Shown here piece after piece: positions 8,275-63,410 of a stretch of 64,000 bases of DNA (position 1 is its first letter; each line of letters begins with the position of its first letter). A program made the translations under genes and the position numbers. This DNA comes from Octopus sinensis (lineage: Eukaryota), in the NCBI RefSeq assembly GCF_006345805.1, contig NC_043000.1, forward strand, positions 25,358,001-25,422,000, given 5' to 3'. Under the pieces are notes generated by a model. The model worked only from the letters and a program-made list of their open reading frames with translations, was not told where the DNA came from and did no database searches.

Positions 8275-8489
8275 ATATGGCGGTGTGATAAGAAGCTTGC
8301 ATCCCAGCCACCGGGTTTAGTCCCACTGCGTGGCACCTTGGTCGAGTGTCTTCTACTATAGCCTCAGGCTGACCAAAACCCTGTTAGTAAATTTGGTAAA
8401 CGGAAACTGAAAGAAGACCGTCGTATAGACGTATGTGTGTGCGTGTTTGTGTGTGTGTGTGTGCATGTGTGTGTGTATATGTATATATT

Positions 8490-32454: not shown

Positions 32455-32815
32455 CAGACTACGGCCATACTGGAGCACCGCATTTAGTCGAGCAAATAGA
32501 CTCCAGGACTTATTCTTTGTAAGCCTTGTACTTATTCTATCGGTCTCTTTCGCCGAACGTTACGGGGACTTAAACATACCAGCATCGGTTGTCAAGCGAT
32601 GGTGGGGGGACAAACACACATACACGCACACACATATATATATACATATATACGACGGGCTTCTTTCAGTTTCCGTCTACCAAATCCACTCACAAGGCTT
32701 TGGTCGGCCCGAGGCTATAGTAGAAGACACTTGCCCAAAGTGCCACGTAGTGGGACTGAACCCGGAACCAAGTGGTTGGTAAGCAAGCTACTTACGACAC
32801 AGCCACTCCTGCGCC
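32455..32815 (-). mobile_element. CORE-type tRNA SINE
   Basis: Head, core and tail present. Confidence 0.85.
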
Positions 32816-32839
32816 TATAAACAAAACGGACGAAATACC

Positions 32840-33055
32840 TATTTCTTTACTACCCACAAGGGGCTAAACACAGAGAGGAGAAACAAGGACAGACAAACGG
32901 ATTAAGTCGATTATATAGACCCCAGTGCGTAACTGGTATTTATTTAATCGACCCCGAAAGGATGAAAGGCAAAGTCGACCTCGGCAGAATTTGAACTCAG
33001 AACGTAGCGGCAGACGAAATACCGCTAAGCATTTCGCCCGGGGTGCTAACGATTT
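32840..33055 (-). mobile_element. tRNA/Meta-like SINE, tail A, ending at the GACGAAATACC target motif
   Basis: GACGAAATACC at 32829-32839 abuts the tail and recurs at 33013-33023. Confidence 0.85.
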
Positions 33056-34639: not shown

Positions 34640-34860
34640 GTATATTTCTTAATTGCCCACAAGGAGCTAAACATAGAGGGGACAAACAAGGACAGACAAA
34701 GGGATTGAGTCGATTACATCGACCTCAGTGCGTAACTGGTACTTTATTTATCGACCCCGAAAGGATGAAAGGCAAAGCGGAATTTGAACTCAGAACATAA
34801 CGACAGACGAAATACGGCTACGCATTTCGCCCGGCGTGTTAACGTTTCAGCCAGCGCACC
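34640..34860 (-). mobile_element. tRNA/Meta-like SINE, tail A, within (TAG)n
   Basis: Near-full copy flanked by TAG repeats on both sides. Confidence 0.85.
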
Positions 34861-42049: not shown

Positions 42050-42890
42050 TTATTTATTGTCTACAAGAGGCTAAACATAGAGGGGACAGACAAAGGAATT
42101 AAGTCGATTACATCGACTCTAGTGCGTAACTGGTATTATTTAATCGACCTCGAAATGATGAAAGGTAAAGTCGACCTTGGCAGAATTTGAACTCAGGGCG
42201 TAACGGCAGACGAAATACCTATTTCTTTACTACCCACAAGGGGGCTAAACACAGAGGGGACAAACAAGGACAGACAAACGGATTAAGTCGATTACATCGA
42301 CTCCAGTGCGTAACTGGTACTTAATTTATCGACCCCGAAAAGATGAAAGGCAAAGTCGACCTCGGAGGAATTTGAACTCAGAACGTAACGGCTTGCTAAC
42401 GTTTCTGCCAGCTCGAAATACCGCCAAGCATTTCGCCCGGCGTGCTAACAATTCTGCCAGCTCGCCGCCTTTTCTATTTTGTTCATATTCTTTTTTATTC
42501 TAGGCAGAAGGCCCGAAAAATTTTGGGAGAGGGGGCCAGTCGATTAGATCGACCCCAGTACGCAACTAGTACTTAATTTATCGACCCCGAAAGGATCGAA
42601 GGTAAAGTTGACCTCGGCAGAATTTGAACTCAGAACGTAGCGATGGGCGAAATACCTATTTCTTTATTACCCACAAGGGGCTAAACACAGAGAGGACAAA
42701 CAGGGACAGACAAACGGATTAAGTCGATTATATCGACCCCAGTGCGAAACTGATACTTAATTTATCAAGCCCTAAAGGATGAAAGGCAAAGTCGACCTCG
42801 GCGGAATTTGAACTCAGAACGTAACGGCAGACGAAATACCGCTAAGCATTTCGCCCGGCGTGCTAACGTTTCTGCCAGCTCGCTGCTTGT
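42050..42890 (-). mobile_element. Nested cluster of four tRNA/Meta-like SINE units (two SINE-in-SINE insertions)
   Basis: CGAAATACC direct repeats at 42201/42414 and 42648/42832 bracket tail-A inserts. Confidence 0.85.
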
Positions 42891-47560: not shown

Positions 47561-47699
47561 CACGAAAAGCACATGGTTGCAGTATGACCGGAAGATATAT
47601 TCTTTTATTCTCATTTCTTTATTGCCCTCAAGGGGCTAAACATAGAGGGGGCAAACAGGGACAGACAAAGGGATTAAGTCGAAAAGTTTCTCATTTCAC

Positions 47700-57692: not shown

Positions 57693-57907
57693 TGTCGAGA
57701 ATTTCTTTAACATCCGACCTTGTAGAGTAGTAGGCATTACGACCATCAACCGACTTCTTCCAAGAATTTCCTGGATGTCCCGTGTGGAATTCCTTTAAAA
57801 ATGAGTGAAGATTTTGTCTGTATAGTGCAGGAGTGGCTGTGTGGTAAGTAGCTTGCTTACCAACGACATGGTTCCGGGTTCAGTCCCACTGCGTGACATC
57901 TTGGGCG

Positions 57908-57999
57908 CCTGGTACTTAATTTATCGACCCCGAAAGAATGACAGGCAAAGTCGACCTCAGCGGAATTTGAACTCAGAACGTAACGGCAGACGAAATACG
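57908..57999 (-). mobile_element. 3' part of the Meta-like SINE interrupted by the LINE
   Basis: Contains the B-box and core; ends at TSD copy 57984-57999. Confidence 0.9.
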
Positions 58000-58247
58000 A
58001 ATTTCTTTATTGCCCACCGGGGGCCAAACATAGATATGGACAGTACAACTGATGGGATCAGTGAATCGATATGATTTTACATAAATGTGACATCAAAAAT
58101 AAAATACAATACATAAAAATCGAATGGAATACACAGTACAAAAACAATACAAATGAAGCGATGATCAAGTTACGCTCCGATCCCACAAGCCCCGATCTAC
58201 CGCTGATACCTTTTTATTTTTCCTTTTTTTTTTTTTTCCTCGTCTAT

Positions 58248-61200
58248 TCACACGGTTCCTTGCACGCACAACACTCGTGCAACATACTTCCATCTCTTTT
58301 GGAACGTACACTCTGACAGACACCTCTTCTCCAGCCACAGTTTCCTTTTCAAATGAAAAGAAAAAAGGATCGTAAATTGTCACCAGAGATAAAGTTGCCT
58401 GTCTTAATTCCTTTTATCCTAGTATTCCATACAGCCTCTTTTGCTATTGCTACAACCGTGAGAAAACAATTCTTACCTTCGTTCGTTAGAACTCCCGGTG
58501 GGTCAATTTTTATAATTGACTCAGTCGACAGCCGTACTCTTCCTTCGCCGGACAACAGATTCAGCATAAGCCCACATTTCAGTTATCTCCGGACACTGAA
58601 CAATAGCGTGAGGGACGGTTTCCCTGTCCCCACCGCATCTTGGACAGGTCGGCGACTGACGTTTACCATGTCTTGCGAGCTTATCCCAAACGGGCAAGGC
58701 ACCTCTGTAGCATTGCCAGGTTAAGGACTTTTGGAAGTTGTCCAACGTTCTCAACCCGAATGTACGATGAAACAAGCTGTCCAGTTGAATAAATCCGAGA
58801 CCTAGAGTCGACCCCAGGCCATCGTCGCATTCAGACTCTACCAACCCACTATATAAAATCCGTGTGGAACCCCCACCGCTGGCGTTGCCCGACGAGCGCG
58901 GAACAGCAAGAGGGCCTTACGGCACTCTTTATGCCACTCACTCGACCTCGGTCTACGAGAACACCAGGCTTCCTGTTCGCAAAAACTCTTGAACTCAGGG
59001 AACATTTGTCTGGCCAGCGGAGACCACACCCGTTCACTATCCAGGAGAATCCAGAGGTGCCTCAACCTCAACGCATGTCTGCGCATCATTAACCAAGGCA
59101 TCCCTAAACCTCCATTTAAAGGCTTTTGACAGCAGACAGAGCGTTTCACAAGTGGCGACCTGCCCTTCCACAAAAAGCGAAAGAGCTGTCTCTCCAACCT
59201 GATCAACCACGAATCCGGACAGGGCACGACAGTCAGGCGGTAGGTAATGACCGATGCGATAAACACATTGGCCACTTCCGCCCTCCCTTTCAGGGATAGC
59301 CACCGCCAAGACCAAGTCTTGACTACTGCAGCCACCCTGCTCAATACCTCCGTCCAGTTCTTCTCTATCTGGAGGCCTGGTCCAAACCAGACTCCCAGCA
59401 ACTTAACCGGTCCCTCCGTCCAGCGCCTAACAACACTGTCTGAAGGCATCGACTTGCCAACCCAGGTGCCGAGCTGCAAGCCGACCGACTTTTCCCGGTT
59501 AATCTTTGCTCCTGCTACCTCCTCGTAAGCCTCAATAGTCTTACCTACTTCACGTAGGCGTACCACTGTGGTTACACTGATAGTGATATCATCCGCGAAA
59601 GCCGTAACAAACTCCTCTAGTCCTGGTTCTCTCGGGATGCCACTCAACCTTTGCAGTAATGGCTCGAGAGCCATCACATACAAAAGTGGTGAAAGCGGAC
59701 ATCCTTGACGAACCGAGCGTCTGATGCAGAACGGCTTCGAAAGGAAACCGTTCACCCGAACTATCGAGTCAATGTTGTGGTACAAAGCGATAAACCACCG
59801 AGGAAGCCAAGGCCCAGGCCAAACCGCGCAAGTACAGTCGCTAGGTATCGATGGTCAACCCTATCAAAAGCTTTAGACTGGTCCAAATGCACCAATGCCC
59901 CACCTTTGCCAGATTTATTACCAAACCTCTCTATGGTATAGCGAATAAGATGGAGGGTATCCTGAATGGTTCTGCCTGGGATGGCACATGTCTGTGCCTC
60001 CCCGACTATACCATTCGCGACACGCGCCAACCTTTTTGCTAGAACCTTGGCCAAAATCTTCACTTCTGCGTTTAACAGAGTGATGGGCTGAAATTCTCTA
60101 GAACGTCCCCCTTGTCCGGGTCCTTTCTGACCAACGTCACTACTCCCCGGCGCACAGATCTGGGGATAAACCCATTCTGTTTCCAGTTCGCGTACACGTC
60201 AGTCAGTAGTTGCCCGAACAAGTCTGGCATACATTATACAGCTCGTACGGAAGACCATCAAGTCCCGGTGACTTACCCGCTTTACAATCGGCCAAAGCCT
60301 CCATCACCTCCTCAAGTGTGATTGGCCCTTCGCAAGACTCCGCATCCGACCCCGAGAGGCACGGCAGCCCGGTAAGAAAGTCCTCGAGGGCTCTCCCACC
60401 ACCAGGACCGCCGTCACCCCCGAACAGCTGGGCGAAGTACTCCCGAAAGACCTCACACATTTTCTCGGGTTCGTTTATCAAGACACCATTTTGATTCGTC
60501 AAAGACCGAATAGAGGAACTATTTCCTTGCCGAGCTTCCACCACTCGGGCCCATCCAGCGGCTTTGATTCCTTCACTTCCCATTGCACGTAACTTAGCTC
60601 TGGTAATACTTCCCATGTGGTGGGCTTCAAGATGCTGGTTTAACTCCAGTCTTTTCACCCTCGCTTGGTCTGTATTACCAGTCCTCCAGGCTTCTTCTAG
60701 TTCCTTAACTAGACCATCTCCTATTTTACGTCCCTTCTTAGCTAAACTTATGCTAAACCTAATAGACTCATATTTGATGGCTCTTTTTAGGGCGTACCAC
60801 CATTTGTTATTAATGATGGTACCTGTTAATGCCCTCTGTATTAACATCTTGATCCGCTTTCTGTACTCCTCAATCGCCAAAAGGGACGTATTGAGTTTCC
60901 AGTAGCCAGATCCTGTCTATGCAACTTATCTACCGTCAGTTTACAGGTAACCATTGTGTGGTCACTGTAGCTGACTAGAAAAAACTGTGGACACTCAACT
61001 ATGGACTTATCTTTTTCTCTAATTAAAATCCTATCTAGATATGTTCTGGTAGACCCGTCACTATTTGACCACGTCCACTGTGGAGTGTTCGGGTGCTCCA
61101 ACCTATATGGATCTGCTAGCTGAAATTGACTTAGCAGATCCCGAAAGCCTGTGTTACATTTTCTGTTCATGTTCGAGTTTGAGCCAACACAATCTGTGTG

Positions 61201-61643
61201 TGCTGCACATATTGTATTAGAGTCTCCTAACACTACTAGTGAATGCGACGTGGCTAGGAACTTTCCTAGGCCACGAAAATATTCAGTTTGCGGGCCAATA
61301 ATGTTGGTGCATAAATAGCGACCAGCCTGATTGTCTTGCCACAACTGAATGTCAAGTCGAGAACGACCAGCCTGCCTTCTGGGTCAGAAAAAACCAACTT
61401 TTTCTCGGCTACCCGGTTTCTTTTTAGTAGGACCAACACCCCACCCCCACCTCCCGCCCGACTCGGAGAAACGTATTTCTCGTAGCCGTTCAGGAGGGGG
61501 AGCAGATCTCTTGGCCCCTTCACCCGGGTTTCCGTTGCAACAATTACATCCAAATTTCTCGACCTGATGTCATTCAGAAAGCGTCCTTGCTTCCAGCTTG
61601 ACAACAGGCCATGAACATTTAAACAACCAATGTGAATAGCCAT
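58248..61643 (-). CDS. LINE ORF2: APE endonuclease, RT and C-terminal Cys-rich finger (~1135 aa if 8 frameshifts are corrected)
   Basis: IGCLNVHGL..ATETR, VAIYAP, GYWKLN, KSPGLDGLP, FRPITLLN, DQSKAFDRVDH, VRQGCPLSPLLY, FADD, CPRCGGDRETVPHAIVQCP; no in-frame stop found. Confidence 0.9.
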
Positions 61644-61654
61644 CACTTACCTGT

Positions 61655-63209
61655 TTAATTAGGATTGTCCGGTGGAGGGGGACCCTCCACCTTTTTTTTA
61701 TCCAGGGTCGGAGGTGGACGGTCTTGGGAAATAGATTTGTCAAAATCCCGTCTCACCACCGACACAGAATTATCAGGTGGAGGGGGAATCTCCACCTTTT
61801 CCTTTTCTCGCGGGATCGGAGCTGGTAATCCATGAAATATCGACTTGTTAAAATCTAATCTCAATGAAGATACAGTCTTTCTGTACTTATTTTGTAGAAT
61901 TCTATAAGTCTTATTTGAGACTTCATATATGTCGTAATTGATAAATTCCTCTGAAAGGTTATCAATTTTTTTTACAGTCTTTATGAGTTGAATGTCTCTC
62001 ATGAGCTCAGTATCTTTAGTGTATACGGCTATTATGCCTTTTTCTTCTTTTTCTCTTCTGGCAGTCTTTTTGGTCGTTGTTCTGTAGTAGTCGCCGCTCT
62101 CGGCTGGGTTGCTGGTTGTATTTTTCTTTTGTTTGTTGTTTTTTTCTCATCTGTTTCTTCTTTATCTTCTTCCTCTTTGTCTTTTTTCTCCTCTTCCTCC
62201 TCTTCTTCATTTTCCTTGCAGTTCCTTCGAATGTGGCCTAATTGACCACATAAAAAACATCGAGGTTTTCGGCCCTCAACAAACACCACGAGGTTCTCCT
62301 CCCCTACCTCAATTGTCTCAGGAATTGTTTGAATTATTTTAGGGTCCGCTTGAATGAGAAGATTAATTGTTTTACCATCCCAGCGTGGGTTTTCCGTAGC
62401 GGTAGCCTGGAGGAGAGTAATTTTTTCTACCTCTTTGATTAGGACTGCCGCCAACAACCACATAGGTTCGACCTCTGGCGGGACCCTTGTAATTTTTATT
62501 CGCGACGTCCTCATCCCCATATAATAGGGTATTAACTCCACGTCGTTCGTTTTCAACGTTTCCACTGAGTTCTTGTGTGCTATTTCTTTATTGGTGAACC
62601 TTACTTCCACCGTTCCGAATTTTTTTCCTCTTCTCAGAAATACTACGTCGCCCAATATTGGCTTTAAGCACTTTTCTATTTTCTCTTCTGACATTCTTTC
62701 AATTTTTCTATTTTGTAGACAATATGTTTTGAAAATTATTGTTTTTTGCTTTTCTTCCTGTAATAACTTTTGCGGAGGTTCAATTTTCACACTGTTGTCA
62801 TTTATTTCCATCATTTTGCTGTATTTCATAATTTCGCTTTTATTCGTCGACAGTATCTGGGTTCCACCCCCAGCAGCCAACGCAAAACTTTTTTTCCATT
62901 TTTTGGTTCTATCTGGATGCTAGGCACATCAATTATTCTCTTCGACACAATGCCTTTGTTCTCTGGCAAAGTCGGAAACTCTTCTGGTGAAAGTTCTGAC
63001 GAGCTCTCAGACACATCTCCAAAAATATCAAATATATTATCCTCTCTGCTATTCCTTCTTGTAGCGGGGGAAACCCCTATTTCCTTGTCTGTAGTTGGCT
63101 CCTCGCCGGACATGTATTTCCTCCTCTCAACAGGAGAAACAAGTATTTCTGCTCCAACGGTAGGCTCCATGCTAGACGACATTCTTCCCCCCAAAGGGGG
63201 AATGAACAA
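61655..63209 (-). CDS. LINE ORF1 (Gag-like, one CCHC zinc knuckle; ~510-518 aa if 2 frameshifts are corrected)
   Basis: CFLCGQLGHIRRNC; three consecutive ORF-track fragments joined by -1 shifts in A-runs. Confidence 0.85.
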
Positions 63210-63346
63210 CGCGTGCTACCACAAGCACTAAGTGTTTTCAATTGAAAACTCCAACAGTTAAGTTATTCAACAGTTTAACAAGAAACAACAGTTGTTAACA
63301 ATATTAACACCACGAAACAGCAATTCTTACTTCACGAACACATGCG

Positions 63347-63410
63347 CGGCAGACGAAATACGGCTACGCATTTCGCCCGACGTGCTAACGTTTCTGCCAG
63401 CTCACCGCCA
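63347..63410 (-). mobile_element. 5' head of the Meta-like SINE interrupted by the LINE
   Basis: GGCGGTGAGCTGGCAGAAACGTTAGCACGTCGGGCGAAATGCGTAGC followed by the TSD. Confidence 0.9.

Follow-up and report, generated by a model that had tools for sequence, protein, structure and literature searches.

Target-specific long interspersed nuclear elements (LINEs) related to L1 include Tx1L and Tx2L of Xenopus, which reside in Tx1D and Tx2D, as well as Keno (U2 snRNA), Mutsu (5S rRNA), Dewa (tRNA-like arrays) and Kibi/Koshi (microsatellites). The closest described system to the one reported here is Tx1-Mar/SINEU of crocodilians, in which one specific site of a Mariner element serves Tx1 LINEs as well as short interspersed nuclear elements (SINEs); the target site duplication (TSD) is 16 bp long, and SINE insertions occur in tandem (Kojima 2015, PMC4494074). 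Other targets of Tx1 elements comprise U2 snRNA, 5S rRNA, microsatellites and piggyBac, long terminal repeat and Harbinger elements, with no partner SINE among them (PMC4494074). In octopuses, papers on repeats describe abundant SINEs and recently active L1-Tx1 elements and contain nothing on such targeting (PMC13282606, PMC8967140); the L1-Tx1 insertions annotated as recently active in O. vulgaris average ~5.4 kb (PMC13282606). Here we describe a full-length LINE lodged within a SINE in a 64,000-nt stretch of the Octopus sinensis genome (NCBI RefSeq assembly GCF_006345805.1, contig NC_043000.1, positions 25,358,001 to 25,422,000 of the forward strand; hereafter the window). The conclusion that this LINE homes into a SINE family carrying its own tail is well supported, and in the literature covered, which leaves Repbase Reports outside, no account of a LINE that targets its partner SINE came to light, whether for cephalopods or for other organisms.

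A 47-nt head and a 184-nt unit, the latter beginning at the target site, make up the SINE. Family A (SINE-A) ends in the tail ...GTTTAGCCCCTTGTGGG(T/C)A(G/A)TAAAGAAATA, and family B differs from it in the tail but not in head or body. In the window, a 5,347-bp LINE on the minus strand (63346..58000) interrupts one such SINE, the halves of which share its orientation, and an exact 16-nt direct repeat, CGTATTTCGTCTGCCG in the minus-strand reading, bounds the LINE at 57984-57999 and 63347-63362; this arrangement, first noticed in the first-pass annotation, can be read directly from the letters. The order along the minus strand, from 63409 to 57908, is the 47-nt SINE head (running GGCGGTGAGCTGG...GCGTAGC), the 16-mer, the LINE, the second 16-mer and the continuation of the SINE, which is A-like at both diagnostic positions still present. 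The insert opens with CGCATGTGTTCG and closes with ...GGCCCCCGGTGGGCAATAAAGAAATT, and it is full-length, its 5' end being identical to that of more than 100 other copies. In the window, 9 occurrences of the tail motif compare with an expectation of 0.44, and 6 of the site motif with one of 0.03; a chance origin of these occurrences is excluded. Three tail-A copies in the window were also said to end at the same nucleotide of the same motif, and they do, each tail being followed by A and GGTATTTCG, with the motif starting at 32839, 42219 (originally given as 42209) and 42656.

The specificity of the LINE extends to the whole genome, which comprises 2.72 Gb; all counts given below come from exact patterns, with about 100 places listed per pattern, and are lower bounds or samples. 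The LINE-specific 3' end pattern, CCGGTGGGCAATAAAGAAAT plus flank, has 177 exact matches, and about 85 among the 100 LINE-type 3' ends listed continue with T+(C/G)GTATTTCGTCTG, producing the junction AAATT-(C/G)GTATTTCGTCTG. Of 30 LINE-type 3' loci inspected, 26 proved to be true LINE copies; most have 98-99.5% identity over 1.5 kb, a few 85-95%, and every one of them (26/26) lies at the SINE site; the remaining four loci, with other flanks, are short SINE-like tails with no LINE. On the 5' side, the junction pattern AGC-NN-TATTT-N9-C(A/G)CATGTG (CATGTGTTCGTG after C(A/G)) has 109 matches genome-wide, and 100 of the 100 junctions listed consist of SINE head plus site. In 3 of 48 LINE 5' junctions the site is preceded by the tail of a SINE-A unit with no head, indicating that the head is not required and that the determinants lie at or downstream of the nick. 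Intact head-joined sites number at least 52,720 in 2.7 Gb (exact matches), and random insertion would strike the target nucleotide in well under 1 in 10,000 events. Because two T-type ends among the matches listed lie at non-SINE G(G/A)TAT sites, the specificity of the LINE for the SINE site is about 98%, short of absolute. It is thus well supported that the LINE is strongly site-specific for one SINE nucleotide, genome-wide and via independent events; the first-pass annotation had proposed that the LINE targets the SINE.

The independence of the insertions follows from several observations. Seven LINE copies are 99.5-99.97% identical to each other over 3.9 kb, while the SINE remnants beside them are much more diverged and comprise tail-A variants, the tail-B family, arrays and truncations; the outer flanks of the copies are unrelated to each other. 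When the 5' and 3' junctions of 54 LINE copies were paired by coordinates, base 1 of the repeat (C in some SINE subfamilies, G in others) was the same on both sides in 54/54 pairs, with a chance of ~0.55 per copy. It is the near-identical LINEs in old and diverse SINEs, the unrelated flanks and this concordance that establish independent events. The same pairs revise the nature of the repeat, which had been taken for a 16-bp TSD. The repeat in the window is exact, but only about 7 nt are truly duplicated: positions 1-7 (SGTATTT) are concordant in 53/54 pairs, and positions 8-16 are discordant in 34/54, position 14 alone in 25. Since positions 8-16 vary and occur in recurrent 5' versions (...GTCTGTCG in about a third, ...CAGCTGCCG and ...TATTTAGTCTGCCG), these 9 nt travel with the LINE, the RNA of which evidently begins with CGTCTGYCG, a replica of the target sequence after the first 7 nt. 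A stagger of about 16 nt between the two nicks is nevertheless suggested by duplications of other kinds, namely those of SINEs at non-SINE sites (16-20 bp at loci L014, L029, L030 and L026), those of the sandwich insertions and that of a relative from Argonauta, the latter two described below.

These data also bear on the possibility that there is no targeting at all, with the LINE and the SINE halves forming one composite spread by descent or segmental duplication, or with the SINE being an internal-deletion derivative of the LINE, of the kind seen in ingi/RIME or R2-SIDE. Such a relationship would account for the first 9 nt and the last ~40 nt that the LINE and the 184-bp unit have in common, and for junction sequences that are near-identical among copies. 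However, the flanking SINE parts are far more diverged and varied than the LINE and the outer flanks are unique; the C/G variant is duplicated concordantly in 54/54 pairs and follows the SINE subfamily of the head; and nothing inside the LINE corresponds to the SINE head or body. The concordance and the old, diverse SINE flanks exclude both a composite by descent and an ingi/RIME-type relation, and we give this explanation next to no credence.

The LINE has the architecture of an APE-type non-LTR retrotransposon of the L1/Tx1 type, a placement that reflects architecture alone. Open reading frame (ORF) 1 contains a CCHC zinc knuckle at 62259..62218 (Pfam zf-CCHC, E=4e-5 to 7e-5), and no RRM was found in it by Pfam even at E up to 10. 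ORF2, for which Pfam matches were made on separate frame pieces, has the features of the L1/Tx1 group: an N-terminal APE, a reverse transcriptase (RT) and a C-terminal cysteine/histidine motif. Its best solved relative is human L1 ORF2p, with E=4.5e-56 over the endonuclease-to-RT region (R2, 1e-20); the names of homologues were uninformative for naming the clade. The window LINE is 99.92% identical over 3.9 kb to a second copy (copy 1, G000:C1:11522866-11528216), and about 15 of the 20 differences between them are 1-bp indels in short homopolymers. As nearly all frame breaks are of this kind relative to a 99.9%-identical copy, the frameshifts seen in young copies may have arisen in assembly and not by decay; real copies may be open, and since copies are more than 99.5% identical, the LINE may still be active. 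A relative with 61% amino acid identity is present in Argonauta hians (L068, GCA_054771915.1, BAAFZT010000001.1:9781835-9795847). It has a similar tail, GGCCCTTGTGGCTAATAAAGAAATCT, with a partial duplication of the 3' untranslated region (UTR; tail motifs at 8276 and 8642), and its 16-bp TSD, ATTTTTAAAATTTGTA, lies at an AT-rich non-SINE site. Conservation of SINE-site targeting in Argonauta was accordingly rejected for the one relative examined, which combines the same kind of tail with a non-SINE site.

The tails of the LINE and of SINE-A align over about 40 nt, and a GCCC-N5-GGGY hairpin is predicted identically for both. The 31/34 match first reported between the LINE 3' end and the SINE-A tail is reproduced against the CAAT variant of SINE-A. 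The description of the SINE as tRNA/Meta-like was not confirmed: ARAGORN detects no tRNA in the head and Rfam no match at E up to 10, so that a tRNA origin is unsupported by either, and the supposed A and B boxes are only box-like motifs (TGGCAGAAACG; GAGTTCAAATTCC) judged by eye. The target site exists in two SINE-subfamily variants, GCTTAGC followed by G and GCGTAGC followed by C, and intact available sites are ~60% G and ~40% C. LINE junctions are 67% C and SINE-A junctions ~96% G, and SINE-A avoids C at that position in non-SINE flanks also. Among LINE lineages the usage is skewed, with CGCATG at C in 7/7 copies (12/12 among the matches listed) and TATTTA at G in 4/4. The association of LINE 5' lineage markers with the site variant is weak (chi-square p=0.012), and C and G sites stand at ~2:1 in both major lineages alike. 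Base 2 of the LINE (CGCATG or CACATG) was considered as a marker of the site variant and discarded, copies with CA using both variants, and no diagnostic differences between C-site and G-site copies were found in the last 1.5 kb of the LINE.

SINE-A itself ends at the nucleotide used by the LINE thousands of times above chance. Exact SINE-A tails number 138,593 genome-wide, and 34,381 of them (25%) are followed by N-(C/G)-GTATTTCG. Among an unbiased 100 tails, with mismatches allowed (14 or more of 19 matches defining the SINE-site class), 43 adjoin the SINE site, 16 have non-SINE flanks starting with GGT(A/T), 16 adjoin (TA)n and 25 have other flanks. Enrichment for the site in a genome-wide tabulation of 3' flanks, which the first-pass annotation had named as support for targeting, is thus found for the LINE and for tail A alike. 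The 57 non-SINE flanks have in common the motif A-N-R-T-A-T after ...AAAT, with T at +4 in 46/57 and A at +5 in 45/57, and the SINE site conforms to this motif. A typical composite runs from flank to head, unit A, one or more further units and flank; it has a single outer TSD and lacks a second head. Within such composites the upstream units are younger, with a core divergence of 5.4% vs 10.1% downstream (29 pairs vs 7, p=3e-4), and about a third of the downstream partner units belong to the tail-B family. The head appears about as old as the downstream unit, although this indication is weak, the head being CpG-rich. Sandwich insertions of SINE in SINE, in which a head and 13-19 nt of site are followed by a full SINE, number 135 (exact). 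The composites fit a model in which an old SINE receives a new unit, the 5' end of the new unit being joined via homology of the complementary DNA (cDNA) to the site and head of the target.

Other arrangements were seen among these arrays. One locus (L070, G000:C1:195357300-195359500, minus strand) has a 19-bp TSD, GGTATTTCTTCCAGTTCTT, at its outer ends; between them, six identical 65-bp repeats (AAGGCGGCG...head...TAGCGGTATTTCGTCTGCCG) precede one SINE-A body. Similar 65-66-bp ladders are present at C7:15.32 Mb, C18:40.40 Mb and C9:16.12 Mb, and they look like local amplification of the head-plus-site sandwich; nested insertion as a source of such head arrays is ruled out for L070, with its six heads and one body. 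A second recurrent junction, tail A followed by A and AGAAACGTTAGC..., places SINE position ~15 directly after the preceding tail (L010, L012, L018, L024, L026; C1:6319421, C1:6575629), and in L026 a non-SINE TSD also begins with AGAAACGTTATTTC. This junction may reflect microhomology (AAGAAAT in the tail, CAGAAAC in the head) or a second nick preference.

The best overall explanation, to which we assign a probability of about 0.75, is that a young L1/Tx1-type LINE uses target-primed reverse transcription to integrate, oriented like its target, at one set position within an abundant SINE, and that tail-A RNA is copied at the same nick. The bottom strand would be nicked between ...TAGC and (C/G)GTATTTCGTCTGCCG, with a second nick presumably ~16 nt downstream. 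The first 9 nt of the LINE RNA (CGTCTGYCG) are equal to the last 9 nt of the 16-nt overhang, and joining of the 5' end by annealing of these 9 nt would leave only the first 7 nt as a clean duplication. SINE-A, which shares the 3' hairpin of the LINE and AATAAAGAAAT, would presumably be reverse-transcribed by this LINE or a close relative. A tail-A cDNA copied at the nick holds the site and head of its target and would, for this reason, usually be joined by homology, with the net product of one additional 184-bp unit, from site to tail, and no second head. Repeated rounds, together with co-retrotransposition of multi-unit transcripts and local duplication, would then give rise to 184-bp arrays. 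That each new unit or SINE copy provides one more landing site, as suggested at the outset, holds in a descriptive sense, each inserted unit adding a copy of the site.

A number of features weigh against this explanation. Most SINE-in-SINE junctions are without the duplicated head that simple insertion predicts; at one locus (L008) a 5'-truncated unit is followed by further units directly on unique DNA; and some arrays have identical neighbouring units, such as the three at C1:7.40 Mb (C1:7,400,078/261/444) and those of L010/L011. In addition, the LINE terminates in ...AAATT and SINE-A in ...AAATA; the LINE prefers C sites (67% vs ~40% available) and SINE-A is found almost exclusively at G; and CAAT-tailed SINEs, including those with tails identical to that of the LINE, occur in TA-rich flanks and avoid the SINE site. 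The missing second heads, L008 and the identical units point to contributions from inheritance and in-place duplication, and some arrays probably go back to the inheritance of multi-unit copies or to duplication in situ. The original claim that the SINE also targets the SINE is retained for the strong excess at the site, and qualified for the arrays.

The first set of these features could be taken further, to mean that the junctions are mostly inherited, multi-unit SINEs being retrotransposed whole and arrays growing by unequal crossing-over or slippage, so that only the LINE is truly site-specific. The SINE-A unit consensus has no run of four T; since the 184-bp unit lacks this stop, a polymerase III transcript would run past the SINE-A end and, in arrays, into the next unit, which could be a source of multi-unit copies. 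The junction is also tied to one tail variant (TAGT in 33/61 at the site vs CAAT in 1/15), composites have a single outer TSD (L009, L014, L029, L030), and L070, with its identical 65-bp heads, demonstrates that local duplication occurs. Mere inheritance is, however, difficult to reconcile with upstream units that are significantly younger than downstream ones, with downstream partners that are diverse, include tail B and each have private mutations and deletions, and with sandwich insertions that have variable 13-19-nt duplications; moreover, the LINE proves that a nick is made at this nucleotide. We consider inheritance as the main source of the junctions unlikely.

The weakest link is the identity of the enzyme that moves SINE-A. 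That it is this LINE, as originally proposed, is suggested by the tail and hairpin that the two have in common, by their identical nick position, by duplications of similar length and by the presence of old LINE copies at the site; the differences in terminal base, C/G preference and targets of CAAT-tailed copies set out above speak against the proposal. They would be explained if SINE-A were mainly moved by a different, related LINE family with a near-identical tail, a preference for G at +1 and a terminal A, the window LINE sharing with it only the ancestry of tail and target. SINE-A units are ~5% diverged, against less than 0.5% for the current LINE burst, which would also agree with another mobiliser. 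Octopus genomes contain ~80 L1-Tx1 families (PMC13282606), and for crocodilians it has been proposed that different Tx1-Mar families are responsible for the movement of different SINEU families (PMC4494074). A search for sister LINEs tailed in TAGT or TAAT brought up no sizeable variant, CCCGGTGGGTART... having only 11 matches genome-wide, and the old copies of the present LINE at the same site, 85-95% identical, indicate that its lineage was present while SINE-A amplified. A separate mobiliser of this kind is a serious if still doubtful candidate.

Preferences might also be set by the mobile RNAs themselves. An AATAAA lies inside the LINE tail, and an mRNA that extended ~10-25 nt into the flanking SINE could anneal to the nicked site, as for R1; likewise, SINE transcripts could carry, and home to, the flank type of their master copy. 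This would account for a LINE near-exclusive to the SINE site despite the loose A-N-R-T-A-T of the tail-A non-SINE flanks, for SINEs with the LINE-identical tail going elsewhere and for target classes that differ among tail subfamilies, and the weak lineage-site association, with the CG lineage at C in all seven copies and the TATTTA lineage at G in all four, points in the same direction. On the other hand, both major lineages are found at ~2:1 C:G, and the non-SINE GGTAT flanks go on with A (GGTATA) in 7/8 cases, whereas partial annealing predicts TTTCG. The endonuclease of Xenopus Tx1L is itself site-specific, which we also count against RNA-templated targeting, and we regard it as rather improbable. 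Equally speculative is a homing loop in which the target is set largely by homology carried on the mobile RNAs, that is, by the 9-nt 5' arm and read-through 3' flank of the LINE and by the head and site of the SINE. If such a loop existed, a loose RTAT endonuclease preference would be sharpened to single-nucleotide specificity, target preference would be heritable without change in the protein, and a dispersed SINE would be turned stepwise into 184-bp satellite-like arrays.

The features of the locus and the SINE-A copies at the site elsewhere in the window are collected in Table 1.

Table 1. Coordinates, in the window, of the LINE, its target SINE and SINE-A copies ending at the target site
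Feature	Position	Strand	Evidence or remark
Target SINE head, 47 nt	63363..63409	-	GGCGGTGAGCTGGCAGAAACGTTAGCACGTCGGGCGAAATGCGTAGC; stops immediately before the putative nick position
Upstream copy of 16-nt repeat	63347..63362	-	CGTATTTCGTCTGCCG; exact match to downstream copy
True target duplication, 7 nt, CGTATTT	63362..63356	-	positions 1-7 concordant in 53/54 paired copies
9 nt, CGTCTGCCG, behaving as the 5' end of the LINE itself and mimicking the target	63355..63347	-	positions 8-16 vary, recurrent lineage variants
Full-length LINE (5' UTR, ORF1, ORF2, 3' UTR)	58000..63346	-	ORFs, Pfam domains
ORF1 region, ~440 aa in open copy	61861..63182	-	one break in window copy; coordinates mapped from copy 1
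ORF2 region	58248..61643	-	six or more frame breaks in window copy
APE endonuclease	~61643..60950	-	Exo_endo_phos match (Pfam)
RT	~60087..59390; FADD at 59599..59579	-	RVT_1 match (Pfam)
C-terminal zinc-binding zf-RVT, CPRCG...	58646..58590	-	zf-RVT match (Pfam)
LINE 3' tail: hairpin GCCC-N5-GGGC, AATAAAGAAAT, terminal T	58000..58034	-	alignment, predicted hairpin
Downstream copy of 16-nt repeat, the presumed nicked target	57984..57999	-	bottom-strand nick would lie between 58000 and 57999
Rest of target SINE, TTACGTTCTGAGTTCAAATTCCGC...AGTACCAG	57908..57983	-	ends after ~92 of the 184-nt unit
Fragment of unrelated SINE, GGAGTGGCTGTGTGG...CTTGGGC	57828..57907	+	adjoins and truncates target SINE; outside the system
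Full SINE-A copy	42657..42885	-	tail 42672..42658 + A joins head-less tail-B-type unit beginning GGTATTTCG, 42656 downwards
SINE-A copy	42220..42470	-	tail 42235..42221 + A joins head-less SINE unit from 42219
5'-truncated SINE-A	32828..33050	-	tail 32855..32841 + A, 12 nt of site GGTATTTCGTCC (32839..32828), then unrelated DNA

Further elements of the window lie beside these. In the SINE copy at 42400-42470 (minus strand), an odd 24-nt head piece, AGCTGGCAGAAACGTTAGCAAGCC, replaces TCTGCC directly after GGTATTTCG; it may be the trace of an aborted or template-switched event at the site. Two CAAT-tailed SINE-A copies are situated away from the SINE site, one at 34644-34860 (minus strand; tail GGGCAATTAAGAAAT) within a (CTA)n/(GTA)n microsatellite, the other at 47613-47690, 5'-truncated and with a 16-bp TSD, GAGAATAAAAGAATAT. 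Unrelated to the target SINE is a further SINE family, GGAGTGGCTGTGTGGTAAGTAGCTTGC...CTTGGGCAAGTG, judged CORE-like by eye and represented at 57828-57907 (+) and 32700-32815 (-). At 57907/57908 its fragment is fused head-on to the truncated target SINE, and a similar junction exists at L060.

Target-specific LINEs have usually been described from multicopy genes of the host, from microsatellites or from other transposons. In octopus the haven is a SINE family that bears the tail of the LINE, and SINE amplification enlarges the supply of landing sites; exact matches number at least 52,720 for head-joined and at least 34,381 for tail-joined sites. The proposed series of events would show, in testable form, how tandem arrays can develop from a dispersed SINE, which bears on SINE-derived satellites and on the SINE-rich genomes of octopuses. 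The system appears suited to studying single-nucleotide specificity of APE-type LINEs and the joining of their 5' ends. In practical terms, octopus repeat annotation would mis-split LINE-SINE composites unless the site is known.

Comparison with other elements delimits the features peculiar to the octopus system. R1 and R2 of ribosomal DNA, with the SIDEs, have a strict site, flanking target sequence in the transcript that aids joining or priming, and non-autonomous derivatives at the same site; R2, however, cuts with a restriction-like endonuclease, and its target is a host gene, whereas the octopus LINE is APE-type and its target is a mobile, amplifying repeat. Human L1 moves Alu in trans, and A-rich parts of Alu are good sites for the L1 endonuclease that draw further insertions; poly(A) and a loose TTTT/AA site are what L1 recognises, compared with a shared hairpin tail in octopus and a site fixed to a single nucleotide by at least 9-16 nt. 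In trypanosomes, the ~5-kb ingi LINE appears flanked by halves of a short element, RIME, which is a deletion derivative of ingi. The octopus SINE differs from RIME in that the flanking halves are older, diverse targets and the LINE contains no SINE body. Tx1L/Tx2L, Keno, Mutsu, Dewa and Kibi/Koshi are, like the octopus LINE, L1-related APE-type elements with ORF1 and ORF2 and a defined multicopy target, but none of their targets has been described as the partner SINE of the LINE itself.

The resemblance to the crocodilian Tx1-Mar/SINEU system is the closest. In both systems a LINE and a SINE share a target inside a repeat family, with duplications of about 16 bp and same-site tandem SINEs. In crocodilians, the SINE families vary in strength of preference, which has been attributed to different LINE families, and LINEs and SINEs have 5' sequences in common (PMC4494074). 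The octopus elements are more than 99.5% identical, against 85-90% in Tx1-Mar/SINEU, and the usual product, unlike that of the crocodilian elements, is a head-less 184-bp unit that forms long arrays. Finally, the crocodilian target is an unrelated DNA transposon, Mariner-N4_AMi, whereas in octopus it is a SINE family with the tail of the LINE, so that amplification makes new targets.

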